A stretch of DNA of 33,111 bases from Macrostomum lignano. Its lineage: Eukaryota. Below are positions 692 through 33,111 of this stretch, one piece after another (the stretch's first letter is position 1; each line of letters begins with the position of its first letter). Location of the stretch: positions 1 to 33,111 of the forward strand of contig NIVC01004857.1 in the NCBI GenBank assembly GCA_002269645.1, read 5' to 3'. Position numbers and translations under genes: made by a program. Under the pieces are notes generated by a model that saw only the letters and a program-made list of their open reading frames with translations, made no database searches and was not told where the DNA came from.

Positions 692-3600
692 ATGCGAGCT
701 GTTTCCAAATTTCTATTGCTTCTGGCTGTTGCGCACACCGCTGCTATCCAAGACTGTGAGTTTGAGTTGAGTTCGGGGGTTTCAACCAAGGCAATAAATT
801 CTCAATCGACAGCTTCATCACTGTTACTCGCAGGCAAAATAGAAATCCGCCGCACGCGCGTTCTCAACTCGTGGCAGTCGTCCTTCGGCAACGGTCCAAC
901 TTGCTTCCACAACAGAACTGAATCGGAGGAAGCCGCTGTGCTCAGCAAGCCCAGCAGCAGCTACAGGTTTTTTCACAGCGGGGACGGCTCGGCAGCAGAC
1001 GGCGGGTTTCACTGGTTCGCAGTGCAGCTGAGTGAGCCACTGCTCATCAGCTCAGTGACCCTGAAGGGCAGAGAATGTGAGTGGCACTGTGATGCAGCTC
1101 ATGCACGCACAGAGCTCGTTCGACTTGATTTTCTCAACTCATTCTAGACGGGAAATCGTTCACTTACTCGAGAACCAGGGGGATCGAAGTCTGGACAGCA
1201 GGAAGCAGCAGAGTGATGCTCTCGGGAGATCACTGCAGCTCCAGGAGCATGAGCAGCCAGTTCAGAGAGTCGCGGTGGTACTGGAGGCTGTGCGGCGTCA
1301 CGGACGGCCAGCAAAGAAGCATCAGGGCTGGTGAGACACTGACGGTGAACTGCACACAGGATGTAAGTGTCTCAACCAGTGCATCAATAAACTGCAGTGT
1401 TCTAATGCTTCTTTTTTGAACAAGTTATTTTTCAAATCCAGGTCCGGTACTTACTGTTGAGGCGTGACGTCAGAACTGCTGATCCTTCCATGACCCACGA
1501 CTTCATGAGCTTCGCAGACCTCAGCCTGCAGACAATGGAGCTGAGTAAGTGCTGCGGATTGGACAGAACATGCTCACCTGGACACAGTTGATAGCAAATA
1601 GCAAAAATTCTGATCACGAAAATGTTCACGAAAATTGGCACGATTCACACCCATAAGGCGCAACCCCCAAGGCACAGAGAATGCCGTCAGCATTATATCA
1701 ATTACTAACTTTGCGAAGTGTCTTCCCCTCGTCTGCAGAAGTGTCTTCCCCTGAAGAGACGGTTAGAAACGACAATGTCTCAGTCAGCTGCTCACTGCAC
1801 TGCAAAGGTACGAAAGTCGACGCGCAGACAAAAAGATTAAAGCTCTGCTCTCCTCGTGGCAGCTGCACAGCTTCCAACGCGGTACACATCCCAGAATCCA
1901 GTCAGAGGACTCAGGAAGTTACACCTGCAAGATTGGTACGGTCAGGAAGACCACCAACCTCACCGTGTATTGTGAGGCGCTCTTCAATAATTTTTCTCGA
2001 AATTATTTTCTTTCGCTTTTCAAACAACGGAAAATCCGAATGAATCCGAATCCGCAGACCCACCAACGAGAGTGGCGGTCTCAGTGCTGAACTCTCAGAA
2101 CTGCCAGAGTTTGACCCATGTGACCGTGCAGTTCACGTCTTCCTCATCGCAGCCCGTGTCTGAGCACAGATGCGACGCCAGAGTTGGAGTCAACTTGTGG
2201 AATCTCACACTGCTACCAGTAGTGCGTGCTCAAAATTGATACAGTACTGACTGACTGACTGACTGACTGACTGACTGACTGACTGACTGACTGACTGACT
2301 GACTGACTGACTGACTGACTGACTGACTGACTGACTGACTGACTGACTGACTGACTGACTGACTGACTGACTGACTGACTGACTGACTGACTGACTGACT
2401 GACTGACTGACTGACTGACTGACTGACTGACTGACTGACTGACTGACTGACTGACTGACTGACTGACTGACTGACTGACTGACTGACTGACTGACTGACT
2501 GACTGACTGACTGACTGACTGACTGACTGACTGACTGACTGACTGACTGACTGACTGACTGACTGACTGACTGACTGACTGACTGACTGACTGACTGACT
2601 GACTGACTGACTGACTGACTGACTGACTGACTGACTGACTGACTGACTGACTGACTGACTGACTGACTGACTGACTGACTGACTGACTGACTGACTGACT
2701 GACTGACTGACTGACTGACTGACTGACTGACTGACTGACTGACTGACTGACTGACTGACTGACTGACTGACTGACTGACTGACTGACTGACTGACTGACT
2801 GACTGACTGACTGACTGACTCACTATTAACTGCAAATGTCGCTGCACTGCAGAGCAAGGACGGTTACGTCAGCAGATGGGTATTTCCTACTGATGACGTA
2901 AAGAGGCTGGATATCAGCAGCGCCATCATCACTTGCTCTGCCGTGCAGAGTTTTCCGAAGGGCATCCGTATTCAGGCTGTCCACACAGACTCAACATTCA
3001 CGAGCTGTTGCAGCGGAAGTCTGGTGTCTACAGTACTGGTGCTCCACATCGCTATGGGATTTTGTTTTGGCTTCATCGCGGCCGCAGCCTCCGCGGCAGC
3101 CATCAGACTCCGAATGCTCAACCGGGTAAGTACACACTCACAATGTGGCTGACATTGTGCACCAGAGGAGGTTGCAGGCAGTTGACGAAACTTCTCGAAG
3201 ATGCTGCGAGTTGTTAGAACCATCAATTTGGATTTCTGTTGCTCATCGATTTCATCAAGACGTCAATTATGAAGTTGCTCGTCCGATTTCATCAAGACGT
3301 CACTTGTGAAGTTGCTAGTCCGATTTCATCAAGATGTCACTTGTGAAGTCGCTCGTCCGATTTCATCAAGACGTCACTTGTAAAGTCGCTCGTCCGATTT
3401 CATCAAGACGACACTTGTGAAGTCGCTCGTCCGATTTCATCAAGACGTCACTTGTGAAGTCGCTCGTCCGATTTAATCAAGACGTCACTTGTAAAGTCGC
3501 TCGTCCGATTTCATCAAGACGACACTTTGAAGTCGCTCGTCCGATTTCATCAAGACGACACTTTGAAGTCGCTCGTCCGATTTCATCAAGACGACACTTT

Positions 3601-3814
3601 GAAGTCGCTCGTCCGATTTCATCAAGACGACACTTTGAAGTCGCTCGTCCAATTTCAGACAAGGCCGGACTCCTGCGGCTCTGCAGGCTGTGCCCGGCGG
3701 CGTCCAACGGCAGGGAGACCGGCCGCAGGGGGACCGGCGGCACCGCAGTCTGCATCTGAGTACGAGAACTCGGAGTACAAGCTGGAGAATGCGACTGGAA
3801 TCTATATTCTGTGA
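692..3814 (+). CDS. Gene A: F-type-lectin-like + Ig-like type I membrane receptor (multi-exon; one apparent 1-nt frameshift)
   Basis: Exons 692-755 (signal peptide MRAVSKFLLLLAVAHTAA), 834-1076, 1148-1362, 1442-1544 (lectin domain: WQSS...FFHS...HWFAVQL...SVTLKGR...IEVW...CG...C...VRYLLLR...MSFADL), 1739-1971 (Ig-like, frameshift at ~1907), 2058-2221, 2853-3125 (TM VLVLHIAMGFCFGFIAAAASAAAI followed by RLRMLNR) and 3659-3814 (tail ending EYENSEYKLENATGIYIL*). All junctions are GT-AG with compatible phases. A small extra cytoplasmic exon near 3166-3210 is possible but unresolved. About 483 aa if the frameshift is repaired. Confidence 0.8.
2246..2820. repeat. Perfect (ACTG)n microsatellite, ~143 units, intronic in gene A
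   Basis: An uninterrupted gact run lying between exons 2058-2221 and 2853-3125. Confidence 0.98.
3238..3658. repeat. 37/36-bp minisatellite, ~11.5 units, in the last intron of gene A
   Basis: Six 37-bp units gaagtcgctcgtccgatttcatcaagacgtcacttgt (3271-3492) are followed by four 36-bp units ending gacacttt (3493-3636). There is a degenerate 5' unit and a partial 3' unit ending at the splice acceptor. No spacers. Confidence 0.95.
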
Positions 3815-4171: not shown

Positions 4172-4248
4172 AGGAGTCAAGGGTCAGGAGTCAGGAGTCA
4201 GGATTCAGGAATCAGGAGTCAGGAGTCAGGAATCAGGAGTCAGCAGTC
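4172..4248. repeat. (CAGGAGT)n heptamer repeat, short block
   Basis: caggagt units with caggatt and caggaat variants. Confidence 0.9.
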
Positions 4249-4677
4249 AGTGTGGGGTAGGCTGTGTGGGGTAGGCTGTGTGGGGTAGGCTGTGTGGGGT
4301 AGGCTGTGTGGGGTAGGCTGTGTGGGGTAGGCTGTGTGGGGTAGGCTGTGTGGGGTAGGCTGTGTGGGGTAGGCTGTGTGGGGTAGGCTGTGTGGGGTAG
4401 GCTGTGTGGGGTAGGCTGTGTGGGGTAGGCTGTGTGGGGTAGGCTGTGTGGGGTAGGCTGTGTGGGGTAGGCTGTGGGGGTAGGCTGTGTGGGGTAGGCT
4501 GTGTGGGGTAGGCTGTGTGGGGTAGGCTGTGTGGGGTAGGCTGTGTGGGGTAGGCTGTGTGGGGTAGGCTGTGTGGGGTAGGCTGTGTGGGGTAGGCTGT
4601 GTGGGGTAGGCTGTGTGGGGTAGGCTGTGTGGGGTAGGCTGTGTGGGGTAGGCTGTGTGGGGTAGGCTGTGTGGGGT
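4249..4677. repeat. 14-bp G-rich minisatellite (GCTGTGTGGGGTAG)n, ~30 units
   Basis: Near-perfect 14-mer tandem array with one GGGG tract per unit. Confidence 0.97.
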
Positions 4678-4924: not shown

Positions 4925-5686
<762 letters not shown>

Positions 5687-5687
5687 T

Positions 5688-5700
5688 CAGGAGTAAGGAA

Positions 5701-5734
<34 letters not shown>

Positions 5735-5833
5735 ATCAGGAGTCAGGAGTCAGGAGTCAGGAATCAGGAGTCAGGATTCAGGAGTCAGGAATCAGGAGTC
5801 AGGATTCAGGAGTCAGGATTCAGGAGTCAGGAT

Positions 5834-5881
<48 letters not shown>

Positions 5882-5910
5882 ATCAGGAGTCAGGAGTCAG
5901 GAGTCAGGAA

Positions 5911-5984
<74 letters not shown>

Positions 5985-5985
5985 T

Positions 5986-6028
<43 letters not shown>

Positions 6029-6029
6029 T

Positions 6030-6070
<41 letters not shown>

Positions 6071-6078
6071 TGTCAGGA
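5688..6078. repeat. (CAGGAGT)n heptamer microsatellite, ~55 units
   Basis: Tandem caggagt/caggaat/caggatt units. Confidence 0.97.
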
Positions 6079-7056: not shown

Positions 7057-10000
7057 ATGAAGCTGACTCTGCTGCTACTGCTGCTGCTGGCATTGCTCTG
7101 CGCACGAGCGACTGACACGTGTGAGTTGAGTGCCGGCTTGTTGTAATCGCAGACAGAGAGCACTGCTCATCCCCATTGCTCCAACTTGCAGGCGAGTTCC
7201 CAATTCGTTGGAGCCGCGTGCTGAGCACCTGGCAGTCGTCCTTTGGAATCATCTTTGGAGAACCCACGTGTTTCTACCAACGAAGCAGGTCGCGTGAGGA
7301 TTCCTTACTAAACAATATAAGATACAAATTCTTCCACAGCAAAGGGCAGGGCGAGGCGGACGGCGGGTTTCACTGGTTCGCAGTGCAGCTGAATGAGCCA
7401 GTGCTCATCAGATCTGTGACTGTGAAGGGCAGAGGCGGTGAGTCACTCACTCAAATGCGGGCTCCAAGCCAGCTGTCTCTGCTCACGGTGCTCTCACATT
7501 CCAGATAAAGCATCGCATGTCTTTGAAAGAGCCAGAAGCATTGAGATCTGGACATCAGACAGCAGCAGTCAGCTGTTCTCAGGAGATCACTGCAGATCAA
7601 GGAACATGAGCAGCCAGTTCAGAGAGTCCCAGCAGCACTGGAGACTGTGTGGGGTCACGGAGAGCAACAATTCACAGATCGCGGCTGGGGAGATCTTCAC
7701 AGTGAACTGCGTTGCAGAGGTGAGTTTTGGAGCGAAATCTGGTAACCATCGCAACCGATTTCGCAACACCAACGCAACCACTTCAGGTGCGGCAGTTGCT
7801 TCTGCGAAGAAACGTTACAGCTGCTTCAACTGACCACGGCTTCATGAGCTTTGCGGACCTGCGGCTTCAAACGCTCCCGCTGAGTAAAAGCAGCTGTTCT
7901 CAAATGTTTGCTTCTTTGATTACGCGAAAAAAACAGTTATTGAGCCCTCTAATTTTGTCTGAGATGGGATACTCCCCTTTGCCTGAAGTACTCAAACAAG
8001 AAGATTCTAGCATGTTCCCTTTTACCATTTAGCCTGTACAGTTGTAAGTTTTTCAACCGAGACTGCTAGGGTAGATTTATCAGTGCTTGATTGATCCAAA
8101 CATCTCGCTTTCAGACATTTCAAGCCCTCAACTGGTGGCAGAGCAGTCCAGCTTTGAAGTTCGCTGCTCTCTGCAATGCGATGGAGCTGATCACCTGAGT
8201 ACACACTCAGCCAAGTTGCAGCTGTGCTCACCAAACGGCAGCTGCACCGTCAGGAACCAGCTGAAGGTCGACAGAGCTCAGCCATCGCACTCTGGAGTTT
8301 ACACCTGCAGAATTGGCTCGATAAATCAATCGTCTTCAATCACAATCCTATGTGAGAGCCTGATGTAGTTTGAGTTTGCTCTTATTAGTTCCTTAAATAT
8401 TAACCTGCCTGTCACAGTTAAAATGTTCCTGTAAATTAAATATAGACAGCTTTTAATACGGAGACCTTGATCATGCCATTTCGTATCGCATTCCAGCGTC
8501 ATCACCAAACCAAGTGGTTGCTGAGAACTCCAGCCTCACGCTGAACTGCACTCTGCACTGCGGAGGCGGCGATGCAGCTCAGTGCGCAGACTCCGCTGCT
8601 GTCGGACAGCTGCTGCTGTGTCGCCCCAACAAGACCTGCACAGCACAGACGAGTCTGCAGATCCCAGCGGCAACTGCAGCACAATCGGGAGACTACAACT
8701 GCAGCATTGGACAGGTGGTTGCTGTCACAAGTGTGGCTGTTCTCTGTGAGTAGCAGCTTTGCACCTGAGTGGTCAGTCACTGTCTGCATGTACATCGCTG
8801 ACAAATGAAGTCATTCCTGTTTGTTATTTTACAGCTGCAACGCCGCATCAAGTGGTCCCTGAGGGCTCCAGTCTCAGCCTGGGCTGCGTACTGCATCATG
8901 CGGGCTCAGCTGATTTCCGCCAGCCTCAGCTGTGCTACCCGAACGGCAGCTGCTCAGCTGAGAGCTCGATAAGCGTTGCCAGTGCCAGGCCATCGAACTC
9001 CGGTCTCTACAGGTGTCGGCTCGGCTCACTGGAAATACCGTCACTTGTTGCTGTGCTGTGTAAGTTGCTCAGATCATCTTACACTTTCTTGCACTCTCAG
9101 TTTCTGAACAAGAACTGATCAGTTTCTCTGTGGATCAGTAAGTGATCAGTCTCCAGATTCATTCTTGTACAAAAGTAAGAGTTTCTCTACTGACAAGTGT
9201 AGCATGCTTAAGCAGGCAGTTCGGGCACCTATAGTTTGCACTCCGTGACCCCCACCCAGCCTATCCACTTCCCTCTGCTCGAGCACATCCCAACGCGCAC
9301 TCAATGAACTGGTAATCTGTGTTCTACCAGACAACACTCGTTAATATACAGACACAGCCACATTCTATTTCTCCACCGTTTTGAGTGGCTAACTATGCAC
9401 TCGCAACAACCAGCTAGAGTTGCTCGCTACAACAAGTAGAAAGCAATGAGTGTGGCGATTTATTCCTGCATGCAAGGCAAAAAATGTGACCAAGTAAGAG
9501 AGCAGAGTTCTGGTAGGAGTTCCGACTTGAGCTTGGATGAAGACGTATGAGTATGAACATGATCAGAAAAATCCATCTCAGGGTCGATATTCTACTCGTA
9601 CTTTTAAGCAGCTGTGCACTCCAAGTGGGGACTGCCGACACAATCAGCAGATCCACATTGCTCATGTGAAACATCTGTCAAAATTACTTCAAGTCGCTGT
9701 TCTGAGTGAGTCATTGATTAGCTTAAAATGCTTTCACTAAAGATGGCAAGGATGCATTCGATAGGACACGGAGATTTTTTCCACCAAGAACTTCCATTTC
9801 AATAGAATAGAAATAGGCTCAGTTTGAATAAATTTATGTATCTGAAATTTATTAAATTCCCAGCTTCATCTCCGAGCCAGAAAGTTTCCGAAAACGCAAG
9901 CTTCACCGTGAGCTGCTCTCTGCACTGCGGAAATGCATCGCAATGCTCAGACCGTCCACTGGGTGGCGACCTCCGGCTGTGCCCTCCGAATGGGAGCTGC

Positions 10001-13000
10001 CTGACAAATTCAAGTGGACAGAGCTCAGGCAATGCACTCCGGAGTTTATACTTGCAGATATGACGTCATTGAGATTGAGACAGAAGTCTTTGTTCTTTGT
10101 GAGTAGAAAGTAGGCTGCCTTCAGAATCTTGTTGCTCAGTGTTGCTCAATGTTGCTCAGTGTTGCTCAGTGTTGCTCAATGTTGCTCAGTGTTGCTCAAT
10201 GTTGCTCAATGTTGCTCAGTGTTGCTCAGTGTTGCTCAATGTTGCTCAATGTTGCTCAATGTTGCTCAGTGTTGCTCAGTGTTGCTCAATGTTGCTCAGT
10301 GTTGCTCAGTGTTGCTCAGTGTTGCTCAATGTTGCTCAGTGTTGCTCAATGTTGCTCAGTGTTGCTCAGTGTTGCTCAGTGTTGCTCAATGTTGCTCAGT
10401 GTTGCTCAATGTTGCTCAGTGTTGCTCAGTGTTGCTCAGTGTTGCTCAATGTTGCTCAATGTTGCTCAGTGTTGCTCAGTGTTGCTCAGTGTTGCTCAAT
10501 GTTGCTCAGTGTTGCTCAGTGTTGCTCAGTGTTGCTCAATGTTGCTCAATGTTGCTCAAGTGTTGCTCAGTGTTGCTCAATGTTGCTCAATGTTGCTCAA
10601 TGTTGCTCAGTGTTGCTCAATGTTGCTCTGTTTGCTCAGTGTTGCTCAGTGTTGCTCAGTTTTGCTCAGTGTTGCTCAGTGTTGCTCAGTGTTGCTCAGT
10701 TGCTCAGTGTTGCTCAGTGTTGCTCAGTGTTGCTCAATGTTGCTCAGTGTTGCTCAGTGTTGCTCAGTGTTGCTCAGTGTTGCTCAATGTTGCTTAATGT
10801 TGCTCAGTGCTCAGTGTTGCTCAGTGTTGCTCAGTGTTGCTCAGTGTTGCTCAATGTTGCTCAGTTGCTTGCTCAGTGTTGCTCAATGTTGCTCAATGTT
10901 GCTCAATTGCACAATCGATTAACTCACCTTCATCAGGTGAGTTCCCAGTTCGGCGAAGTCGCATTCTGAGTTCGTGGCAGTCATCATTCGACGATGGTCC
11001 GACGTGTTTCCACAGCAGGAATCAGGCAGACGAAGCCTCCATCATCAGCAACAGGCAAACCAGCTACAAGTTCTTCCACAGCGCCAACAGAAGCCAAGCA
11101 GACGGCGGGTTTCACTGGTTCGCCGTGCAGCTGAATGAGCCAGTGATCATCAGATCTGTGACTTTGAAGGGCAGAGAGGGTGAGTGAAAGACAACTTACT
11201 TCTTCTTTCTGCCTTAGGCTTCTGTAAAGACTGAGTCTCCTGCTCTGAAGATTCCACCGTACAGTAATATGTTTCAGTAAGATCAAAAGTAACTCCTCAT
11301 CTTATTTTCAGACGGTGTGATATATAATTATAATCGAGCAAAGGACATTGAAATATTTACCTCCAACTCTAGCAGCTCCCTGATCCATGGGGATAACTGC
11401 AACATCAGGAATATGGGCCTTCAGTTTAAAAATTCGATGCACCTTTGGAGGCCATGCGGCGTAACTAAAAAGCAGGGAGACGTCGCAGATGGAGAAATGT
11501 TTCACGTGAAATGCGTTGCTGAGGTAAAAATATTTCAAATATCTGCAGTGATTTGAGTCTTATGGTCTCTTAAAGCAACCTGAAATGATGAGCATTTAAA
11601 CTGCAGGTCCGAAGTCTACTCCTGCGAAGAAACGTGTCTAAAGACACGGACGGGCACATGAGCTTTGCTGACCTGAGGCTTCAGACTGGGAAAATCAGTA
11701 AGATTTTTGAGCTGTCATGAGTTGTGTCCAAGTCCTGGTGTGTGTGCTAAGTTGAAGCGCTAGCAGTACATGCAAAATGACTGAAGTTCGTCTCAAAAGT
11801 GTCTCAAATCATTGCATTTCAGAAGTCGAGAGCCCCAAGGCGGTGCTGCAGCACTCAGCATTCTCAGTGCGCTGCCTTTTGGACTGCAACGGTCGAACCG
11901 AATTCTCACCGAAGTTGGAGCTCTGCCTTCCAAACGGAAGCTGCGTTGGACAAGCTGAAGCCGTCATTCACAGGGCGCAGCTGTGGCACCATGGAAACTA
12001 CACGTGCAAGCTGGGCAGCTCGCGGAGCTCAAAGTTCTTAACGGTGTTTTGTAAGTTGATTCCGGCCTCTGGATGACAGTCGATTGATTAGCATTTGGTT
12101 ACAGCAGCGTTGCACTGGGACTCCTCTCGTACACAGATTGGGACAAAATTCTCAGTGTATGCTCACAAGGAGTGCAAGCTTAAGGCTGACTGGTGGCAGT
12201 AGGAGCAGCCTTCAACGGCAGCAGATCAGACTGCATTTCAGGTCACCTTTCTATTAGCCTTTTATCCTTACAGGGTATGTCAACTAAGTCCGGAAAGGGA
12301 AACGGATTGTCAAAGGGGTGGTTTCTCTCTCGGACGCCATTATTGGATCCACCAACCAGTGTAGAACGATCGATGGAGATGTGTACATATTCAAAATATT
12401 CACATAGACTTTTGCACTCAAATGATGTGGAGTAACTTCTATTCATCTTCGGTACGGTATTCAATACGTATCGATCCACGGCCTAAATAGGTTTGAAAAA
12501 ATCATGAAAACCATCAGATAACTGAAAAGCTTATTGATCGAACTTGATGAACTCCATTCCCCTTTTTAATATGCTCACAGACCCGCCATCAAGCGCATCA
12601 ATTTCTGTACTCAATCTGCCAACCTGCGAGAACTCATCCGACGTATTGGTACAGTTCGCATCGTCTGCATCTCTACCAGTGCCCGAGCACAGATGCAGCG
12701 CTGTTGGTGGCGGATTGGAAGTGCGAAACCTCACGCAGCTGTCATTTGTGAGTCGCTTGCATTTTGCACTTTCACACTATGAGTGACTACGCGCTGACAT
12801 GCTGACCAGCGAGCTTCATCAATTCCAGAGCTCGTGCGGAGACGGTTGGGTCAGCACGTGGGCACTGGCGATCGGGGGGAAGCTGAGCTCAGAGTGGCTT
12901 GTGGGCCTCGTCGAGTGCAGCGCAGTGCAGAATCTGCCGCCGGAGATCCGGTTCAAGGCCGAGCACAGGGCCTCAGCTTGCTACAGCTGCGGCAGTCACA

Positions 13001-13438
13001 ATGGTCTCATCAAACCTGATGTGCAGTCCTTACACATGTACATTTCACAGTTCTTGTACGGATTTCTAACAGCAACTGCTCTGCTAAGTGTGCTCTTGCT
13101 TGTCTTGGGCTCGGTGAGTAACCCCTCTCTCTAAATTATATTTTCCGTCTCTGTGCTCTAAGCTGCCGTGTTGCATCTGCTAACTTCAGTTTTCAGTCAT
13201 CAAATTCAGAGTAACAAAGTCGTGGACAAAACAAACTATTCCAATGGTAAGCTTTGATTTTCTCAATCTGTACAGTCGACTCAAACTGTGACAGCTAAAG
13301 TTCGAACTCTTTGCGCTTTAGTCTGATCGATCCACGACGCCTGGATCTGGAGCACCGGTTGCTGCCGCTTCTGCTTCCATGGAGTATGAGAACTCTGGTT
13401 ACAACCTGGAGGATGCTACTGGTGTCTACGTGACCTGA
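7057..13438 (+). CDS. Gene B: double-lectin receptor, SP-FTP-Ig-Ig-Ig-(two decayed Ig)-FTP-Ig-proximal module-TM-Tyr tail
   Basis: Exons 7057-7120 (MKLTLLLLLLLALLCARATDT), 7192-7437, 7505-7719, 7787-7883 (lectin 1), 8115-8351, 8497-8745, 8835-9059 (Ig-like), 10937-11179, 11312-11523, 11607-11697 (lectin 2), 11823-12050 (Ig-like), 12581-12747, 12829-13113 (TM), 13190-13246 and 13322-13438 (tail [19 protein letters not shown]). The exon sum is 2733 nt = 910 aa + stop, open throughout when the two defective Ig exons are skipped. It could instead be two partial genes (7057-10098 and 10937-13438). Confidence 0.72.
9582..9705 (+). pseudogene. Decayed Ig-like pseudo-exon in gene B
   Basis: It keeps the family motif QLCTPSGDC and the terminal VAVL plus a phase-1 GTGAGT donor at 9706. 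It lacks the B-strand Cys region and the SGxYxC strand, and I found no phase-compatible acceptor. The start coordinate is approximate. Confidence 0.55.
9864..10098 (+). pseudogene. Frameshifted Ig-like exon in gene B
   Basis: Good acceptor (ttcccag) and donor (gtgagt). The first frame gives VSCSLHC...LRLCPPNGSC and a second frame continues VDRAQAMHSGVYTCRYD...VFVL. The exon is 235 nt (not 3n). Only 13 nt lie between the Cys codon and VDRAQ (10001-10013), versus 21 nt in the paralogous exon at 8115-8351. Confidence 0.75.
10130..10907. repeat. 10-bp minisatellite (TGTTGCTCAG/TGTTGCTCAA)n, ~77 units
   Basis: Two unit variants (G or A) are interspersed. The array fills the intron between the last Ig exon and lectin 2 of gene B. 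Confidence 0.97.
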
Positions 13439-13459
13439 GGGTTTTCAAGCTGGCAAAGT
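12517..13459 (+). repeat. Near-identical segmental duplicate of 25687-26629
   Basis: Constant offset of 13170 with no indels, and 29 substitutions in 943 bp by manual count (~97% identity). Confidence 0.95.
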
Positions 13460-14865
13460 GATCCTGATCCTGATCCTGATCCTGATCCTGATCCTTATCC
13501 TGTCCTGATCCTGATCCTGTTCCTGATCCTGATTCTGATCCCGATCCTGATCATGATCCTGATCCCGATCCTGATCCTGATCCCGATCCTGTCCTGATCC
13601 TGGATCCTGATTCTGATCCTGATCCTGATCCTGATCCTGATCCCGATCCTGTCCTGATCTTGATCCTGATCCAGATCCTGATCCTGATCCAGATCCTGAT
13701 CCTGATCCTGATCCTGATCCTGATGCTTATCCTTATCCCGATCCTGATCCCGATCCCGATCCTGATCCTGTCCCGATTCTGATCCTGATCCTGATCCTGA
13801 TCCTGATTCTGATCCTGATCCTGATCCTGATCCTGATCCTGATTCTGATCCCGATCCTGATCCTGATCCTGATCCTGATCCTGATCCTGATCCTGATTCT
13901 GATCCTGATTCTGATCCTGATCCTGATCCTGATCCCGATCCTGATCCTGATCCTGATCCTGATCCTGATCCCGATCCTGTCCTGATCTTGATCCTGATCC
14001 AGATCCTGATCCTGATCCAGATCCTGATCCTGATCCTGATCCTGATCCTGATCCTGATGCTTATCCTTATCTCGATCCTGATCCCGATCCCGATCCTGAT
14101 CCTGATCCTAATCCTGATGCTTATCCTGATCCTAAACCTGATCCTTATCCTGATCCCGATCCTGATCCTGATCCTGATCCTGATCCCGATCCTGATCCCG
14201 ATCCTGTCCTGATCCTGATCCTGATCCCGATCCCGATCCTGATCCTGATCCTGATCCTGATCCTGATGCTTATCCTGATCCCGTCCTGATCCTGATCCTG
14301 ATCCTGATCCTGATCCTGATCCTGATCCTCCTGATCCTGATCCTGATCCTGATCCTGATCCTCCTTATCCTGTCCTGATCCCGATCCTGATCTGATCCTG
14401 ATCCTGATCCTCCTGATCCTGATCCTGATCCTGATCCTGATCCTTATCCTGTCCTGATCCCGATCCTGATCCTGATCCTGATCCCGATCCTGATCCTGAT
14501 CCTGATCCTGATCCTGATCCTGATCCTGATCCTGATCCTGATCCTGTCCTGATCCTGTCCTGATCCCGATCCTGATCGATCCTGATCCTGATCCTGATCC
14601 TGATCCTGATCCTGATCCTGATCCCGATCCTGATCCTGATCCTGATCCTGATCCTGATCCTGATCCTGATCCTGATCCTGATCCTGATCCCGATCCTGTC
14701 CTGATCCTGATCCTGTCCTGATCCTGATCCTGATCCTGATCCTGATCCTGATCCTGATCCTGATCCTGATCCTCCTGATCCTGATCCTGATCCCGATCCT
14801 GATCCTGATCCTGATCCTGATCCTGATCCTGATCCTTCCTGATCCTGATCCTTATCCTTTCCTGA
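13460..14865. repeat. (GATCCT)n hexamer satellite, ~1.4 kb, starting 22 nt after the gene B stop
   Basis: gatcct units with gatccc/gattct/gatgct/tatcct/gtcct variants. Confidence 0.98.
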
Positions 14866-15329
14866 GCCTAATTCGATTTATTGTTCTCAGTTCATGAGGA
14901 TGTGTTTATCCCAGAGCTAGATTTACCGTACACATAGGCCAATATATTTTATTTTACTGCGCTTGATACACATTAGAAATAATGACGCAACACTCCCGAA
15001 TACTGTAAAACAGTTTTGAAGCCGACAGTTCAATTACCAATATCACCTGATCTGTTTGATGCAGAAGCAAAATTCTTTTGATAGTTTTTTCAGAATTTAT
15101 TCACAATTCACTTTTTTTCCAATAAACCATATGATATATAGTATTAGCCAATGCTAAACATAGCTGTGCCTTAAGCTACATCATATCTAGCCTAAAGTCT
15201 AAAAGCTAAGCACTGCAGGTCATTTGATGTTTTCAACAGTTTAATATTGGTCCAAGACTTTTTAAAACAAATTTATATTACCATACCTAATTTCATACTA
15301 AATTATATTAAAAAACAACAATATACACC

Positions 15330-16110
15330 TCTTGCCGGCCACAAGTGGTCACAGAGGGGGAGGTGTCAGAACACACGTCATTGGGCCGCACTTCTCAAAA
15401 ATTCATCTCCTCCAGTCAGAGTCGGAACGGGGGTTCTCGCATCCTTCAGAAGCAGCTCGGGGTAGCGCGTCGTTTGCCATTGGCTTCGTCTCCGCGGACC
15501 CTACGCCGTTGACGTAGCGTTGACGTTGACCTAGCAGGTCGTGTAACGGCTCACGGCAGCGACTCTTCGACCGGATGACGTGGCCAGCCAGCTTGAGCCA
15601 GCTTGAGAGCGCAGCATCACAGAGTGCTCGGCGTAGAGCAGAGAACAGTCTCGACGACTGCCCGAAACAGCTGAGCCCTGGTCGCGTCATCCAGAGCCTC
15701 AGATCGCAGCACTGCGAGTGCACCGAGCGTAAGGCGTCTCCTCAAGTCACGGCGATATCAGGCACGAGTTCGCCGAGGTATACAAAATGTGTGGAAGCGG
15801 GGTCTCATTCCTGACAGCATCTCGGCAGGTCCAGCGGCATAGTGAAGACTTCTGCGCGTGCAGCGTGAGAGGCCGACCATCGCTGCCGCTTTCGTCAAGC
15901 CATCCAGCAGCCGTTGGGCGCCTTCGACTGTTGAAGACACTGCAACGCTAGGTCATCCACGTAGCCGAGCACACAAAGACGCTTCTCCGGATGCCTCCGA
16001 CTCATGCGACGTCTAAGCATGAAGCCATTGCCATCGTCCGACTCAGGCAGTCTGGTTCTCAGCACCCAGTACTCGTACGGTACCAGCACAAATAGAAAAA
16101 GCGCCAGCGT
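15330..16110 (-). mobile_element. Degenerate RTE-like non-LTR retrotransposon fragment (C-terminal part of RT)
   Basis: Minus-strand frames give FLFVLV...WVLRT, RLCVLGYVDDLAL (YxDD motif), STVEGAQRLLDGLTKAAAMVGL, FVYLG and KLAGHVIRS, with many frameshifts. Boundaries are approximate. Confidence 0.8.
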
Positions 16111-16457
16111 GTCAACCTAAAGTAGTAATAATCTGCAGTACATGTACAAAGACAAGTAAACTGAGACAGTGTACCATTAAATTCGCATCTGGATTTTTGC
16201 ACTTCCGAATTCCAAATAGAGCTCTGTCAGGCGAAATTTCAGCTGTTCCTGTCTGTTTGAAATTATTGAGTTATAGTTTAATAAAAGTTTCATCATTAAG
16301 CAACGATGCATTGCATAAATGCAAAAGAAAACTCTATTTCAGCAATTCCTATACTGGAGTTAAATTGGAGGAGTAAGTGGGCGCAGGGCCCAAACCGATA
16401 TTTAATGGTATTTATACCAGACATTAACTTTGGGGGTTGAGCCCAGAATAATAAGGA

Positions 16458-17210: not shown

Positions 17211-20200
17211 ATGATGGAAGCTGCAGCGCTGATATCCCTGTTAGGGGCTCTGCTCTGCATCGCTACCTGTCTCTGCGACTGTGAGTGAAAGCTTTTTAAA
17301 CCCTCCAGGGTGTTTTTTCAAGCGAAATGGATTTCTAACTTCTCAAGTTCCTATGTTGCAGGTGGGGTGCCGATTCGCAACAAGACTGTACTCAACGCCT
17401 GGCAGTCCTCTTATTTCTATTCTTGCTTTCACGAGAGAGACCAGCTGAATGAGAGCAATGTTCTGAACACAAGCCAAAGTTTTCAGTTCATTCACAGCAA
17501 TGACAAAAAGCATTTTAACGATAGCGGATTTCACTGGTTCGCTGTGCAGCTGAGTGAGTCAGTGCTCATCGGTTCTGTGACAGTGAAGGGCAGCGAGGGT
17601 GAGTTACACCACAGACCAGTTTTATGAAGCACTGATTGACTAGTTGGTTAACTTACTTGACATAGCTTCAGGGAGTCCGGGCATCCGGATGCAGCGAGGC
17701 GTCGCCGCCCATTTTGCGAACCCCTGGCGACCAGGGAAGCTGGTGCTGCGGTGTTCTGCAGGGAGATCCGGTGGTGCCAGTGTCCGCAGCGCGGTAGCCC
17801 TTAGGTAGCGGACGAGCTGGCAGAGATTCTCGGGCCTGAAAACGTCGGAGAGGTCCGAGTTTGGGCTGAGGTAGGTGAAGCCTGTCCTGAGTAAAGGCGG
17901 AGCATTCACAGATGAAGTGCTCCGCATTCTCGACACCGGAGAGGCAGAAAGGGCATCATTCCTCGCTACGGATTTTTCCTGAAGGTAACGATGCCTGGCA
18001 AAACAGCCATGACCCGAGAGGTCCATGGTCACGGCCCTGATGTCCCTGCGGTTGAGTCCAAGCAGGACTCTTGGCTAGTTGGTTGATTTCATAAAAAACA
18101 GCAGCTGCTTTTTATTGACTGTCTAAGCTGGATGCTGTAATTTAACCCTAAAGTCATCGGTTCGCTTATGAAACTAAATCACTGCAGCATTCCTGAAACC
18201 CTCTTTCTTCCGGTATTTTTACAATCTCGTTGATCTGGCAATAATTTCAGTCTTCTCGGATGCTGAAATGTTCCGCAGCTCAGCTGGCATCGAGATCTGG
18301 ACTTCGAACTCAGAGGAGCAACTGTTTTCTGGCAATCACTGCAACTCAAAAAATATGAGCAAACAGTTTAATAAGTACCTGAGCAGTTGGAAGCGTTGCG
18401 GTGTCACTACAAATAGGTCGATGAGTAGCACACGTAATGGGCTCTACATGGTGGACTGTCTTGCAGAGGTGAGCATTGATGCTACAGAGATTATGTGCTT
18501 AATTAGTTCATCTCACCCGGATCTCAAAATGTTGAGTGCAACATCCCAGGTCCGGTATCTGCTCCTCAGGAGAAACGTGAGCCTGAGCTTCTCAGCCAGA
18601 GACTACGGCTATCTGAGCGTCTCAGATCTGACGCTGCAGACAGTGCGCCTGGGTGAGGCTGTGGACTTTCCCAAAGCACTTGAAGACCAGAGAAGCCTCA
18701 AAAGTGGCATGAAAATATCTGATAATATTGTGGGCTTTGGCCTGACTTTCTAGTCATCAGGCTTGTGCACTCTCTGTGCATTGGGGGCTGGCCTTCATGG
18801 GTCATGAATGACACGAGAACTGCCACGGTAAATAGCATTATAGCATTAAAGTATAAATTTATATGACTTGATTTGCAGTACCATCGACAGACCAACTTGT
18901 TGCTGCAAACGAAAGCTTTAACGTGAGCTGCTCGTGCATTCTATGCAACGGCACGGAGTTGAGCACGAACTCAAGGCAGCTGCAGCTGTGCCAACCAGAC
19001 GGAAACTGCACGAAAACCTGGAAGCTGTCGGTTGTGAAGGCACAGTCGCAGCACTCTGGCCTCTACACCTGCCAGCTTGGCTCTGCCGCAGAGTCAACTT
19101 CCGTCACAGTGCTGTGTGAGCTGAGTGTCATTGCTTGTCTCCATATTTAAATACAATTAATAGACAAAAAGCAACCATAACGTGTTGATTTTCAGCATCC
19201 TCGCATGCGCAAACAGCAGCCGAGAACGACAGTTTTGCAGTGAGCTGCACGCTGTACTTCAATGGTTCGGAGATCATTGGTAACAACACAAGCGGCATGC
19301 AGCTGTGCCAACCAGATGGGAACTGCAGTGCGGGCCCGGAGCTGCGGATCAACAGGGCGCTGCGGCAGCACTCCGGCAGCTACACCTGCCAGGTGAACTC
19401 CACTCGAGTTTCAACCTTCGTTACCGTGCTGTGTGAGTTTCATTTCAATTTGAAATTGAATGGATAAAGAAAGGCCCTTTAACTCATCTGAAATGTTTGT
19501 TATAGCCCAACAGAAACTTAGAAAATAAGTTTCCACTTGACTAAATAGCTTGTGATACAGATGATGATGTCGTTGTGTTGTTGTTGCTGCTGCTGTTGTT
19601 GTTGTTGTTGTTTTTTTTTTGTTGTGCTTTTAAACCTGATGTAACCGCCCTTGTCGCCTGTCCGCTCCGTAGAGAGACGAACGAGGGGGGGGGGAGACGA
19701 GAGAGGGGGCAATGACCGTAGGCTGCCTATGACCGGGCAATGACCTGACGGACCTCCAGCACCAGACTGTCCCGTCCACATGATTGATAGCTTTGGTAGT
19801 GCTTCGTGACCAGAGGGCCAAGGACCCACATGGACCCCACCTGCAGCCAAGGTGCAAAACCTGCAGCAAAGGCTGCCACCACTCTATGTGACCTGGCGCA
19901 CCTGGATCTTTCTACCAGACCTCTCGAGGCTAGAGCCCCGCCTGGGGTGGTTACCAGGAGATTTAGGCTAACAGGGGAGACACATGCAGCCGAGTACAGG
20001 GACTCTGCTTGGGGCATGATCGGGAACTCTGGGCTCAATCTGGAGGATTTCTCAGCAGGGGATCCTTTGTGGCTGTGAGCGAGGCTGACTTGCGACTTTG
20101 ATTACTAAGAGTAGTATGAGGCGAACATCTACTGTCTCTAGTTTAGATTGCTCAGGGCGAAGGGACGCGTCAGCATGGGGGTTGCAACCTTCCTACTGCC

Positions 20201-23200
20201 ATTCTGTGCCAAGACTCGCTAATCCCTCTACTGCACGCACACACGGCCCCGCAGCACGCACTCACAGACGAGCTTTGCACGGGGAGAGGCCATTAACTTA
20301 CCCAAACTTCCCTATGCTTTGCCACCCCGGGAGAAAGGCTTAGCAAGCCATGAGTGAAATGATGGTGAAAGAGTGAATAATGATGAGGTTAGTTAATAGT
20401 TAATAATTAGGCCCTTAGGCAAATAACCAGGCAATTAGGCGGCTTCACTATTGAGTAAAAATACAGCAAAAGGTACGGTATCACAACTGGCTCAGCCCTC
20501 TAATCAGACAATGGAAAATAGGCAAACCCCGGATAAGCAAAGGCAATTAGAGCACAAATCAGTAACAGGAACTTACCGGCAGCTGCACAGAGAGAGAGAG
20601 AGAGAGAGAGACGGAGTGACCGAGGGTGGCTGTAGGCTGCAGTCAGGCGGACAGTGAAGCGGCGATGCGCTGAAGCGACGAGGCGCTGGTGTAGATCAGG
20701 CGAAGCTGATGATGCTGGGCGGTGTCAGACCGCTGGCCAATAGGCGAGCTCACTTGGGGAGCTGAAGATAACTTGGCGGTATCAGACCGCAGACCGGCAG
20801 GGATTCGTCTTATAGACGAATGGGTCAGAACTCAGTCTGACGGCAAGTCTAAAGAAAGACTAGGAGCCCGAAGGTGGGCAAAAGTTGAGTCTTCTCATGC
20901 CGAAAACCGCCTCCTTTTATAGCCTTCCCAGCCGCCGCTCCAAGGTCGTTTCCATGGCTCCCTCTCTCTGATTGGCTGCCGGCCGAATGACGTCAGAATG
21001 AGTCATGATGAGAAACATGAGACCGGCATAGCAACATGAGAAATAGGGAAATTGCGCAATCCGGAGGTGGGGTGGGGGGATAATTGGCGCAGCGGGTGGT
21101 CGCGAAAGTGTTGCGCAAGCAAACATTGAGAACAATAGGGCTGGGGTCGAGAACAAAGGAATTGGAAATCGGGGATAATTGGGGAGAATCGAGAACAATA
21201 GAAAAGCAAACATTGGAGAAAAGGTGATAATTAGGTGCGAAAACGAGAACAAAAGAAAGAGAAAATCGGAGAAAATGTGATGATTGGTGGGGGTAAAGAG
21301 AACAAAAGAATCAAAAACGAGAACAATAGAAGCGGAGGTGGGGTGGGTGTCGCATGAGAAATTTGGGGAGGAAAACAATAGCATGAGAAAAGGTTGCGCA
21401 AGAGAGGGGATGAGTCATCGATGAGTCATCGAGGGGAAGAAGGGGTCACACGACTTGCGTCACCGTTTGGGAGTTTGGGAAGGGATGGGAGGTCGATGAG
21501 CACACAAAATACTGTAAGTAGACGCAGAGAAAGAGGGGACAGAGCAGGAAAATAGTGCAGAGAGAGACAAAGAGAGGGGGGATGGGGAAAGTACAAGAAG
21601 ACTAGGGTGGAGCGCAGGGGAGATAAGGTAGAGGGGGGAGGTACAGAGAGGGATAGGGAGCTCCGGAAAGGCAGGTGTGGCGGCAGGGGAGACGGAGTCA
21701 AGGCAGCAGGAGGGTGCAGCAGAGCGGGAGTCTCCAGGCCTGGCCGGAGACCTAACCGAGTCTCGACAGCTCTGCGCAGGGGAGGTGCACGGGATAGGAG
21801 GCACCTTCGAAAAAGTTCCCATGCCCTATCCCGCGACCAGAGCGTGGTTACATCAAACCAATGAGATATAGTCAAGTCAGTTGGCACGAGACGGGCAGGT
21901 TCGAGCCTGGCCAATCCAAACCAAGAAAGTTCGACAGAGAGAGAGTTGGAGCGCGCTAACCCGGCGAGACAAGCCATGCACAGCCGCCCTTGTATCCGAA
22001 TCCCGAACAGATAGGTAGCGAAACACCGAGTTGTCCTTCCAGTCACCCAGCTTCTTGATGATCATCAGCAGTGGAACACCGAGCTGCATGGCTGCTGTAG
22101 CGCCGCGCCGCCGCAGCCTGTGGCTAGTGAACTCACGTGGTGACAAACCCGCCGATGTGTACAGAGTGCGAAGCCGGCCATCAAACCTGCTAGCCGTCAG
22201 AGGCAAACATCCCGTTGCCGACCACGTGGAGAACAGGTGAACCGGACGCGGCGCCTGGCCGATTCGGTTTGTCCGTAGCTGCCGCTCGAGCGCACGGAAC
22301 GGGCACAGGACACCCAAGCTCCCATCAGGCAGTTTCGGAAGAAACACTCGCTGAACTCGGTCGCCAAACTGGTTGGTCTTTGAATGCCGTACGGTGAGCT
22401 CACAGTCGCACTTTGAAAAGACGATGTTTGATGCCGCCAGGTTGCACCACAGATCTAGCCGCTCCGATTGCATCCGATCACATTCGCTTTCCGCAGCATA
22501 CCCCACCAGGCTGCCAGAACAGCTGCCCAGAACGCGATGTCACTCTTCTTTCGTTGGTCCAGGTGGGCGTTCAGCTTGAGGAGATCTGCGATTCTGAGGG
22601 GCTCCCTTGAGCACTGCTACCGACTGAGACATCAGCGAAGACCACAGACCACAACGCACCAGCTTAACCATCGGCGACTCACACGGGTCCGGCCGACCGA
22701 GGGCTCTGAAGTACAGCGAGACCGCGTTAGCGTACGCCTGGCAACTCCGAAAGACTGACAGCCGGGTGACAACTCGGCCACTTACACGGCCACGTGCACC
22801 GGCTGCGCGCGCACCGGTGTCAAGTGCTAGGAGTTGCAAAAACACAGCCAGGACGCGAGCTGCGACCGGTAACTCCGCTTTGTGTGGGGCCAGCAGGGCC
22901 GAACGGAGACAGCAGGGCAGAAAGCATGGCTGGCGATTTCATTAAAACAGCAGTTTACAGTGCCATACACTCAAAATAAAAATCGCGCATCTTGCCTACC
23001 GCGTGCAGCCGAGAGCACGGGTCCGCAAAAACGAGGCACCAGCCAGGCATATGAAAAGTGCGCACCTCAACCCCACGCCTAACAGCAATGAGCATGGCAG
23101 TCTGGAACAGCGGCTGCAACTCAGGCTGCCGGCAGCAACCTCTGTTATCATACCAACAGCCGCGACTACGACCGTAGTAGACCACGACCGAACCGTCATT

Positions 23201-26200
23201 TAAAAAGACACTCCAGCGAACCATAGCCAATAGCGGAACAATAGCGTCTTTGTACGTGATATGCTTGTCTTTAAACTTTCCTCCAGCATCCAGATCCCAA
23301 TTGACATACAGCCAATCCATCATTCCGCTACCATTGCGCAAAATGGCACCACCACCAGCACTGCTGGCATCGGTTTCGATGATCCAGCCGTTTGTGCGAC
23401 TTCTCCAAAGCTGAAAATCAGGCAGCTTCAGAAGGGCACCGCGCCACCAGAGTAAAATACGCACAGTGTCAGCGGACACTCGTACTTTGTGATGTGGCTT
23501 TTCCAGGGCATTAGGCAAGTCGAACAGGGGCCTGAGGAAGCAACTCCCAGCGTGCACCACTTGGACGACCCAGCTGAGCTTGCCACAAAGCGACGAAAGC
23601 TGGCGTTTCGAGAGACGCCTGCTCTGCGAGAAATTAAGCAGTGTGGTGCGCATTTCCTCACACTTTCCCGCCGGCACACTAAGAACTCCACGGACAGTAT
23701 CAATCTTCACACCGAGATACACCAAGCATTGCGTAGGTTCAACCACTTTGTTCCAATTGACACCAAAACCCAACTGGCGAACCAACTTCATCAGTTCTTT
23801 CAGGGCATCCATACACTCCTCCTCGCTCTCGGCCGCAACCAGAAAATCATCCAGGTAGACCGAACTATTGGCCACACCGGTCGCACCATCATCCTCTTGA
23901 CCGCTTGAGTAAGCCGGTAGAAAATCTCGACCGAGGCGCAGCTACCAAAGGGTAGCCGGGTGTCGATTAGCCATGTCAGATCACGGTTGCCTTTAAAGCG
24001 CTAACCAATGCCAGTCGCCTGGTAATCATCCGGATGAATCGCCACACTTCTGTAAGCTTGCGACAAATCAAGCTTTGCCATGAACCAGCCCTTGCCGATA
24101 GAGGCTGCAGCCTTCTTGACGGACTCAAACTTAGGGCTCAGCTTCCTCGTATAAGTGTCTTTTACCGAGTAGCCCGGAGGCGTGCTGCAGTCATGAATAA
24201 GTCGAACCTTCCTGTTATCCTTGGGAATAGCTCCCAGAGGGCTGACCATCGTCGGCTTCTCAGGCACCACCACGTATCTGCCATTCTCAGTCTCTTCCTT
24301 AATTTGCAGCTTCGCAGAGTTCAGTTCTTGTCGAATGGTTCGCCTCATGGTGGGCCTCAAAACAGATACGGCAAACATGTCGGAATTTGCAGCTTGAAGT
24401 GCAAGTAGATCTCTAGCCCGTCTGCCGTTCTGAGGCTCTTGGGGTCTATTGGTTTTGAAAACGCTGCTGCCATGGCTGGGGCAATGACTTGCTGACTCCA
24501 TGGTTTGCTCGAGTTTCAGTTCTGATTAAGTGCTTAGCAACGAGTTGGAAAGACTCCTTGCCCCAGCACATACCAGTTTCAGCTTGCCTAGTGCGTTAGT
24601 CCTCTTCAAAACGGTTCACCTGAGCAAGGCCGAAGCCCGCGTCAAACAGCTCGCCTATCTGTATTGAGTAGCGTAGGTGATTCATCAAATCAGTCGTGTC
24701 GGCAATTCCATTCCTATTAGTCACCAGGGCACCATCCTTGATCATTTGCATCATCAGCCTGCCATTGCCTACCAAATACTGCGCTGCTGTGATGCTATTA
24801 TGTTTTCTGCTCTTGTAAGTGATTCGGCCACCAAAATCATTAGCCAGCACCTCTTTCTGCTCAAAGCCGTCAAGGAAATCACGAATCAGGAGAGCCTTAC
24901 GCCTGCCCGAACACTCCATCCGTTCATTAGCCCTGTTCCGTGACAACAATCTACCAAGCAGCTCATTGCCATTATCTTCCTGGTCTAATCCAGCATCATC
25001 CCACACTTCAGGAAAGCAACTGGGGGCAGCAGGCTTGGCACACTCACCGCGATTCATAGGATGGACACTCGCGTTGCAGATCTCCGATCTCCCTCTTGAG
25101 TTTAGCGGCTTCCTTGTGTAGCTGCAACAGTCTGATCTCCTCTTCCACCTTCGCGATGTCCTCGTCCAGGCCCGCCGCCGACTCCCGAGCCGCCTCCGTA
25201 CTGATGTTGTCGTCTGCATCGGCTTCTTGCTCATATTGCTCCATGTTCTGCAATAGCGAGTCTGTTCACGACTGGTCTGGGGCCGCGAGCAAGGCGCTGA
25301 CAAGGTCGGCCTTATTGCCCCGACTGCTTACATTAGCGTGGGCACACAAGGCTTGCAGAGCCACCTTGCTCAGGTGCATGAGTTTCACGCGGTCCGCCAT
25401 TGCAAAAAGAATCGATACGCACTTGGCAGGCCATAGGCAGCCCGCCCCACATTAAATAAAGGCACATAAACCGGGGGCACGGGACCAAAGGCCCGGCCCA
25501 CCACCCCCCTGCACCAACGCACAAGAGCCACCCCCACTGGTTTAACACCCAACCAAGCTACGCCCGGCCGGACCAGTTATTATTTAAGCTCAATCATCCC
25601 TCTTATTTGCAAAAAAGTTGCTGTGCAAACATCTGCTGTGCAGAAGTCTGGCCCAGCCAAATTAACCAATAAATCCGCCTTAATTCGATAACTGAAAAGC
25701 TTATTGATCGAACTTGATGAACTCCATTCCCCTTTTTAATACGCTCACAGACCCGCCATCAAGCGCATCAATTTCTGTACTCAATCTGCCAACCTGCGAG
25801 AGCTCATCCGACGTATTGGTACAGTTCGCATCGTCTGCATCTCTACCAGTGCCCGAGCACAGATGCGGCGCTGTTGGTGGCGGATTGGAAGTGCGAAACC
25901 TCACGCAGCTGTCATTTGTAAATTGCTTGCATTTTGCACTTTCACACTATGAGTGACTATGCGCTGACATGCTGACCAGCGAGCTTCATCAATTCCAGAG
26001 CTCGAGTGGAGACGGTTGGGTCAGCACGTGGGCACTGGCGATCGGGGGGAAGCTGAGCTCAGAGTGGCTTGTGGGCCTCGTCGAGTGCAGCGCAGTGCAG
26101 AATCTGCCGCCGGAGATCCGGTTCAAGGCCGAGCACAGGGCCTCAGCTTGCTACAGCTGCGGCAATCACAAAGGTCTCATCAAACGTGATGTGAAGTCCT

Positions 26201-26608: not shown

Positions 26609-26629
26609 GGGTTTTCAGGCTGTCAAAGT

Positions 26630-33080: not shown

Positions 33081-33111
33081 AATAATGTAACATACCTATT
33101 TGTTCCTAGCT

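Follow-up and report, generated by a model that had tools for sequence, protein, structure and literature searches.

The window analyzed here is a 33,111-nucleotide stretch of Macrostomum lignano DNA (assembly GCA_002269645.1, contig NIVC01004857.1, positions 1-33,111 of the forward strand), and it carries a tandem cluster of genes of a receptor-like family, denoted A, B, and C, every one of which lies on the + strand and is interrupted by GT-AG introns. Genes B and C, whose 5' head exons are widely diverged, end in a nearly identical cassette comprising a membrane-proximal module, a transmembrane (TM) exon, and two tail exons, followed by a 3' untranslated region (3'UTR) with a long hexamer array. 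The stretch of recent identity between these two genes is the subject of this report, and its parts are the following.

12517-13458, + strand: recent tract of gene B 5' of the array, with 64 bp of intron, four exons, their introns, and 20 nt of 3'UTR
12581-12747 (proximal module), 12829-13113 (TM), 13190-13246 and 13322-13438 (tail), + strand: tract exons of gene B, all splice sites AG/GT
13459-14869, + strand: (TGATCC)n array in the gene B 3'UTR, 240 units, 1.4 kb
14870-15111, + strand: 3' unique part of the recent tract in gene B, which stops immediately 5' of a T-run and AATAAA
25687-26628, + strand: recent tract of gene C 5' of the array, which completes the gene C open reading frame (ORF) with the C head
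25751-25917, 25999-26283, 26360-26416, and 26492-26608, + strand: tract exons of gene C
26629-32208, + strand: (TGATCC)n array in the gene C 3'UTR, 937 units, 5.6 kb, with higher-order internal duplications
32209-32450, + strand: 3' unique part of the recent tract in gene C

Self-comparison of the window aligned 12517-13458 with 25687-26628 over 942 bp with 29 mismatches (96.9% identity; 17 transitions and 12 transversions) and no indels, and beyond the arrays 14870-15111 and 32209-32450 differed at 7 of 242 bp, again without indels. An earlier inspection of the letters alone (the sequence-only reading) had put the identity at ~97% over the TM and tail exons and their introns, free of indels, and had it continue for about 250 bp past the array, and both statements agree with these figures. 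Chance is excluded as the source of the identity, the probability of 29 or fewer mismatches in 942 bp being 4e-77 at a background divergence of 25%. Gene C could be modelled as an intact ORF of 575 amino acids in 10 exons, with canonical splice sites even across the 6.3-kb intron 5' of the tract, and the gene B tail ORF, which closes with a stop codon at 13436-13438, is open in the same frame as the gene C tail. This tail is shared by genes B and C only; gene A of the cluster ends in a tail of its own, with no more than 60-72% identity to those of B and C.

The heads that precede the two cassettes are built from discoidin-like and immunoglobulin (Ig)-like exons, and the unit of gene B that carries the tail, B2, was compared with gene C throughout.

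10937-13438, + strand: B2, with head, one Ig exon, and tail
10937-12050, + strand: B2 head, a discoidin-like domain in three exons (10937-11179, 11312-11523, and 11607-11697) and one Ig-like exon (11823-12050)
17211-19432, + strand: gene C head, part of the 575-amino-acid model, with a signal-peptide exon (17211-17280), discoidin-like exons (17362-17598, 18251-18468, and 18550-18652), and Ig-like exons (18879-19115 and 19196-19432)

While the head and Ig exons of B2 and C were 63-74% identical in nucleotides (26-37% divergence), the exons within the tract reached 98.8% (proximal), 97.5% (TM), and 94% (last tail exon). In the heads, protein identity was 43%, with proportions of synonymous (pS) and nonsynonymous (pN) differences of 0.68 (dS about 1.8) and 0.37, respectively, and the introns were unalignable (z from -0.3 to 2.5), as the sequence-only reading had stated. 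In the tract, protein identity was 93%, pS was 0.026 (4/155 sites), and pN was 0.034 (16/469); the tract introns differed at 0.028 of sites (9/316), with z = 44 for the intron between the proximal and TM exons, and divergence in the 3' flank of the tract was 0.029 (7/242). Since divergence in the tract is the same for every site class and the mismatches are spread evenly over its length (chi-square p = 0.39), the identity reflects recency rather than constraint. Constraint was rejected as its cause, with synonymous, nonsynonymous, intron, and 3' flank sites all at ~3%. The ratio pN/pS in the tract is about 1.3, as for tails that have drifted neutrally since the exchange; diversifying change or the decay of one copy is also possible.

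The B and C cassettes are separated by 14 amino-acid differences. One is a Cys/Ser switch at the start of the TM exon (12835-12837; SSCGDGW versus SSSGDGW), another is the loss or gain of an N-glycosylation sequon at 12632 (CENSSD versus CESSSD), and at 13212-13216 the charge changes just inside the membrane (KFRVTK versus KFREKK).

At the 3' side, identity stayed at 95-100% up to 15111/32450 and then stepped down to 65-80% with small indels, the step lying at the T-run, 10 bp before AATAAA (15121-15126 in B, 32459-32464 in C). The sequence-only reading had described this side as a fade; what was found instead is a step, at 15112/32451, onto older homology of about 72-78%.

15112-16320, + strand: older homology in the B 3' flank, matching the C flank at 32451-33095
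32451-33095, + strand: older homology in the C 3' flank, collinear with the B flank to the window end

The homology past the step was strong (z = 28) and collinear for at least 1.2 kb, up to the end of the window, at about 72% identity for 15112-15330 versus 32451-32695 and about 75-78% for 16128-16320 versus 32912-33095. A match of this older homology to the 3' flank or introns of gene A was sought and rejected, none being found there. With a divergence (d) of about 0.3, the 3' flank postdates the heads by far and long predates the tract, so three age layers are present, and the intermediate age of the flank calls for at least two events of different age. A GC-rich segment of 790 bp (15335-16125) is present only in the B 3' flank and is missing from the homologous C flank.

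The 5' edge is of another kind. The first identical position of the tract lies exactly at GATAACTGAAAAGC, 64 bp upstream of the proximal exon, and there identity falls abruptly to random, which confirms the abrupt start that had been noted in the intron before the proximal module. In the 100-470 bp 5' of the edge, local alignment gave only the shuffled level (z from -0.3 to -1.1), and sensitive BLAST found no homology 5' of it; weak ancient similarity adjoining the edge on its 5' side, or lying across the retroelement in the gene C intron, was accordingly rejected. The tract is therefore flanked by older, lower-identity homology on its 3' side (z = 28) and by none on its 5' side (z about 0). 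The sequences that meet the edge are as follows.

12051-12516, + strand: B-specific part of the intron 5' of the tract, without homology to C or to the rest of the window
21851-25579, - strand: DIRS/Ngaro-like tyrosine-recombinase retroelement in the 6.3-kb Ig-to-proximal intron of gene C
22958-23941 and 21880-22539, - strand: reverse transcriptase (RVT_1) and tyrosine recombinase (Phage_integrase) ORFs of this element
25580-25686, + strand: C-specific sequence of 107 bp between the end of the retroelement and the tract edge

The retroelement has its 5' end at 25579, facing the tract, and is 88-93% identical to copies on two other contigs (L002, 7805-12201; L003, 14152-18386), which match only 21851-25579 of the window. 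These other copies have split direct repeats in the arrangement A1...B1-A2-B2, and the copy in gene C is without A2-B2. Comparison with L002 and L003 thus places the end of the element 107 bp short of the edge, and a transposon terminus was rejected as the origin of the sharp edge. No terminal inverted repeats were found for the retroelement or at the tract edge; target-site duplications, inverted repeats, a poly(A) tail, and microhomology were not seen at the tract edges, where Rfam and tRNA scans for a short interspersed element or noncoding RNA likewise found nothing. The 5' edge resembles an illegitimate junction where an older partial duplication stopped, rather than the end of a conversion within homologous DNA. 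One retroelement copy is annotated by NCBI inside a host gene model (P0041, a neurotransmitter-gated channel).

Both (TGATCC)n arrays begin 20 nt past the stop codon, and their start and end positions are homologous in B and C. The patterns of unit variants, on the other hand, showed no collinearity beyond the first four units (~24 bp); a collinear transfer signal in the arrays was rejected on this ground, and the arrays thus give no evidence on transfer. Lying in the middle of the tract, the array would be a plausible site for the initiation of exchange.

Taken together, we regard it as probable, with moderate confidence, that the B/C mosaic was built by two layers of non-allelic recombination, an older partial duplication and a later gene conversion. 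We infer the following order and mechanism of events. In the older step (d about 0.3), a different head would have acquired a B-type 3' half, consisting of the cassette, the 3'UTR hexamer array, and the downstream flank, through partial duplication or illegitimate unequal exchange with its breakpoint 64 bp upstream of the proximal exon. The product would have been a chimeric gene, with the 5' limit of B/C homology set at 12517/25687. In the recent step (d about 0.03), homology-driven gene conversion, perhaps seeded in or near the (TGATCC)n array, would have homogenized the cassette again. The converted stretch would extend from the limit of homology, across all four exons with their introns and across the array, as far as the poly(A) signal, its 3' end falling within older homology. 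On this model the 5' side lacks older homology because the conversion tract reached the limit of the older duplication, and both copies would have drifted at the neutral rate since. The earlier proposal of ectopic conversion or unequal crossover stands in part: the mosaic is real, selection does not account for it, and non-allelic recombination is its natural cause, but the 5' edge, being without homology, looks illegitimate.

The base composition bears on how often such conversion may have occurred. GC content at third codon positions (GC3) was 0.58 in the tails and 0.63-0.66 in the heads, and strong and weak differences were nearly balanced (16 versus 14), so that a signature of GC-biased gene conversion in the tails was rejected. 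With no rise of GC3 in the tails, conversion was evidently infrequent; the composition speaks against a long series of events, though not against a single one. One or two exchanges describe the pattern better than concerted evolution that is still going on.

Several points weigh against the two-layer reading. Joint transfer of the arrays with their flanks cannot be shown, given the noncollinear variant patterns, and the footprint of biased gene conversion is absent from the tails, where GC3 is not elevated. With pN/pS at about 1.3, one of the copies may be undergoing decay, and B2 lacks its own signal-peptide exon. Instead of neutral old duplicate DNA, the older 3' homology could represent a shared repeat or a conserved element. 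Donor and recipient are indistinguishable from two sequences alone, and public collections yielded no second tail copy, homeologous or orthologous locus against which the assembly or the timing could be checked: exact look-ups in them returned no record for the B and C TM-exon ORFs as independent tail copies, and those with four database proteins of the family (P0001, P0003, P0008, and P0010) gave no further contigs.

Among the alternatives, a single recent event is unlikely. In this scenario a double-strand break or collapsed fork in or near the C array was repaired from B. One-ended invasion, break-induced replication, or template switching would have copied the cassette leftwards, non-homologous joining in the intron would have closed its 5' end, and its 3' end would have been resolved in flank homology left from the original tandem duplication of the family. 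A 5' junction that is blunt and without homology or microhomology, a 3' junction within homologous DNA, and an array in the middle of the tract are all as expected from such a repair. The 3' flank (about 72-78% identical), however, is far less diverged than the heads (pS 0.68, introns unalignable), and, being thus younger than the family, it still calls for an event of intermediate age; moreover, tblastn detected no older C tail remnant anywhere in the window.

An assembly artefact, to which we give a similarly small chance, would mean that the C-side tract is the homeologous (subgenome) or allelic 3' half of B, mis-joined behind the C head. Neopolyploid M. lignano has three subgenomes whose paralogous copies differ by 1.9-2.4% single-nucleotide polymorphisms (SNPs) and many large indels, and collapsed or chimeric sequences are known in the Mlig_3_7 assembly (PMC10733133), all of which speaks for such a mis-join. 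The divergence of the tract (3.1% nucleotide, 6.7% protein) is near that of a B2 homeologue pair (P0010 versus P0043, 6.2% protein), and the difference in array length (1.4 versus 5.6 kb) is the kind of indel found between homeologues. Subgenome copies (S, L1, and L2) of this cluster do exist, as P0043 and P0008/P0042 indicate. A B homeologue is nevertheless expected to be ~98% identical past both edges, and the flanks observed are 65-80% identical on the 3' side and unrelated on the 5' side. The junction also lies in unique sequence, 107 bp from a retroelement whose identity of only 88-93% to its other copies makes it a poor substrate for false overlap, and the gene C reading frame is clean across it.

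It is very improbable that the cassette moved as a mobile element, independently of homology, whether by Helitron-like capture, retroelement transduction, or retroposition of an unspliced transcript. The high-identity tract does stop 10 bp short of AATAAA in both copies, and a retroelement lies 107 bp upstream of it in C; but neither edge shows a poly(A) tail, terminal inverted repeats, or target-site duplications, the retroelement runs antiparallel to the cassette and points its 5' end at the tract, and homology continues in register past the 3' edge, unlike at an insertion. Purifying selection alone, without recent exchange, can be virtually discounted, for although B and C agree in their last 19 codons, and gene A and P0002 retain the tail motif, the introns, 3'UTR, and synonymous sites are as alike as coding sites, pN/pS is about 1.3, and the gene A tail is only 60-72% identical.

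The family to which these genes belong appears to encode type I membrane proteins with a short, tyrosine-rich tail, as judged from the predicted translations. The exon order is a signal peptide, a three-exon head, one to four Ig-like exons (all of phase 1-1), a Cys-containing membrane-proximal module, an exon ending in the TM segment, and two small tail exons. The spliced model of the gene ending at 13438 had only four database relatives, all from M. lignano, and HMMER returned only 37 relatives among 1.84 billion representative proteins, a library without organism names; all named relatives are from M. lignano. At least four further heads of the family were found on another contig (L001), and the protein databases represent B2 and C by head fragments only, P0010 (UniProt A0A1I8H768) corresponding to the gene B2 head exons L2, L3, and Ig. 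The family as so far seen is thus restricted to M. lignano, clustered on several contigs, and annotated only in fragments, and no earlier description of the combination of discoidin-like head, Ig, TM segment, and tyrosine tail was found.

The head matched Pfam PF00754 (F5/8 type C) with E = 6e-4 and 20.3 bits, below the gathering cut-off of 28.2, and PF22633 with 15.9 bits, below the cut-off of 27.8. In the AlphaFold2 (AF2) model of P0001, the gene A product, the head has pLDDT values of 80-90, and Foldseek of this head against the Protein Data Bank returned 3cqo (E = 9.5e-7) as well as 1k12, 4pqq, 3nng, 2j1a, and 2v72, with target-normalized TM-scores of 0.5-0.67 for single-domain targets. 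These matches comprise F-type lectins (3cqo, 1k12), the muskelin discoidin domain, and CBM32 modules, and they support a predicted lectin-like beta-sandwich of the galactose-binding-domain-like superfamily. The predicted head therefore shares its fold with F-type lectin, discoidin, and CBM32 proteins, with a weak F5_F8_type_C match, and it differs from F-type lectins and discoidins in scoring under the Pfam gathering threshold. The canonical fucose-binding motif of F-lectins (H...RxDxxxxR/K) was not seen in the head on reading by eye, with no formal test. The Ig exons matched Ig_2 with E = 1e-4, under the cut-off; every Ig-like exon has a C...C pair and a (Y)(T/I)C motif and is of phase 1-1, and the P0001 model shows a beta domain at residues 200-286.

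The conserved C-terminus of the family reads (E/D)YENS(E/G)Y(K/N)LE(N/D)A(T/A)G(V/I)Y. A canonical ITAM (YxxL/I-x6-8-YxxL/I) or ITIM ((S/I/V/L)xYxx(I/V/L)) is absent from the tails of A and of B/C; in these tails, of which that of A reads ...SEYENSEYKLENATGIYIL*, no tyrosine has L/I/V at +3, and the last tyrosine is two residues from the C-terminus. The YEN of the tail presumably fits the pYxN (Grb2-SH2-type) pattern, which serves as a lead only. A receptor function of the proteins of the family is putative, and immune and signalling roles are conjecture.

Apart from the B2 unit and gene C, the window holds gene A and a further head unit of gene B, whose two units lie in series over 7057-13438.

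692-3811, + strand: gene A, product P0001
7057-about 10098, + strand: B1, with a signal peptide, a head, and four Ig-like exons, without a tail

P0001 matches most gene A exons at 100%. It has the Ig exon and is without the proximal-module exon at 2060-2227, and P0003 has the reverse (both are database models, of gene A and its homeologue); this exon difference is either alternative splicing or an annotation error. Between B1 and B2 lies a (TGTTGCTCAG)78 array at 10130-10905. No signal-peptide exon was found for B2, the first exon of B2 has a phase-1 acceptor that fits the B1 exons, and all B1 and B2 exons are phase compatible; gene B may be one two-headed gene, or B1 and B2 may serve as alternative heads that splicing joins to a single tail. 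In B1, the reading frame shifts within the fourth Ig-like exon (9863-10098), between ...NGSCLTN and ...VDRAQAMHSGVYTC, so that this exon either is dead or carries a 1-nt assembly error.

About 29% of the window consists of tandem arrays, with seven different units of 4, 37, 7, 14, 7, 10, and 6 bp (2246-2824, 3247-3657, 4172-4677, 5685-6078, 10130-10905, 13459-14869, and 26629-32208), several of them within introns or 3'UTRs of family genes, e.g., (ACTG)145 and an 11-fold 37-mer in gene A introns. Fragments resembling non-LTR (long terminal repeat) retroelements, with RNase H and a zf-RVT-like CPxC...H...C motif, lie at 4945-5671 (+ strand) and 17643-18074 (- strand), the latter inside the first head intron of gene C.

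In all paralogues, the last 78 nt of the first head exon (...KGRE) agree with one another at 83-94% of nucleotides, and their pS is only 0.08-0.39, versus 0.68 for the heads overall. This could reflect short-tract conversion among heads or nucleotide-level constraint, e.g., a splicing signal. The copies are located as follows.

999-1075, 7359-7436, 11101-11178, and 17520-17597: copies in the window
2085-2178, 10329-10409, 14231-14318, and 18905-18985: copies on contig L001

The events proposed for B and C have counterparts in known systems. Chimeric genes arise by partial tandem duplication or by exon shuffling at intron breakpoints, and B/C resemble them in the breakpoint within an intron, the phase-1 exon cassette on a foreign head, and the non-homologous junction; in contrast to simple chimeric genes, they carry a second, younger layer of identity on the duplicated segment. 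The protocadherin clusters of fugu, zebrafish, and human are likewise made of tandem receptor paralogues with divergent 5' ectodomains and 3' parts that are near-identical even at synonymous sites; in fugu, the 3' parts are >99% identical, which was attributed to regional gene conversion (PMC1852091, citing Noonan et al. 2004). While the protocadherin tract lies within one large exon, that of B/C spans four exons, three introns, and a kilobase-scale 3'UTR microsatellite, and it differs further in that the tail occurs in two genes only, GC3 is not elevated, and no older homology lies behind the 5' edge. Gene conversion has also been described in paired leukocyte receptors (Siglec-11/16, KLRC, CEACAM, and KIR; PMC5701461, PMC3210942, PMC2832619, PMC2768862), with reported interlocus conversion, sharp boundaries between domain exons, and head/tail mosaics, as in B/C. 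The polarity there is reportedly opposite, the ligand-binding heads being homogenized and the tails differing (activating versus inhibitory), and the B/C tail is without ITAM or ITIM. A search of the literature for gene conversion in Macrostomum found nothing relevant.

The sequence-only reading had also proposed that recombination joins different recognition heads to a shared signalling base. Different heads on one tail are borne out for B and C, with recognition and signalling as putative roles, and the sharing does not extend to gene A, whose tail is its own (60-72%). A more far-reaching version, which we consider quite unlikely, is that the 3' cassette together with the kilobase (TGATCC)n array acts as a recombination module repeatedly re-coupled to different heads, a germline "constant region" of a lineage-specific lectin/Ig repertoire with the microsatellite as its hotspot.

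The B/C exchange is a known kind of event, with no new mechanism, in a family that was not found described, and the mosaic is an ordinary footprint of recombination between tandem copies if the assembly is right. On that same condition, it would be a clean, datable case of module recombination in a tandem receptor family, in which heads saturated at silent sites sit on a 3' cassette that was exchanged at least twice (d about 0.3 and about 0.03), with one junction that looks illegitimate and one that looks homologous. For gene trees and gene models in the neopolyploid M. lignano, this means that tail trees will conflict with head trees, and that the divergence of the tract lies near that of the subgenomes.

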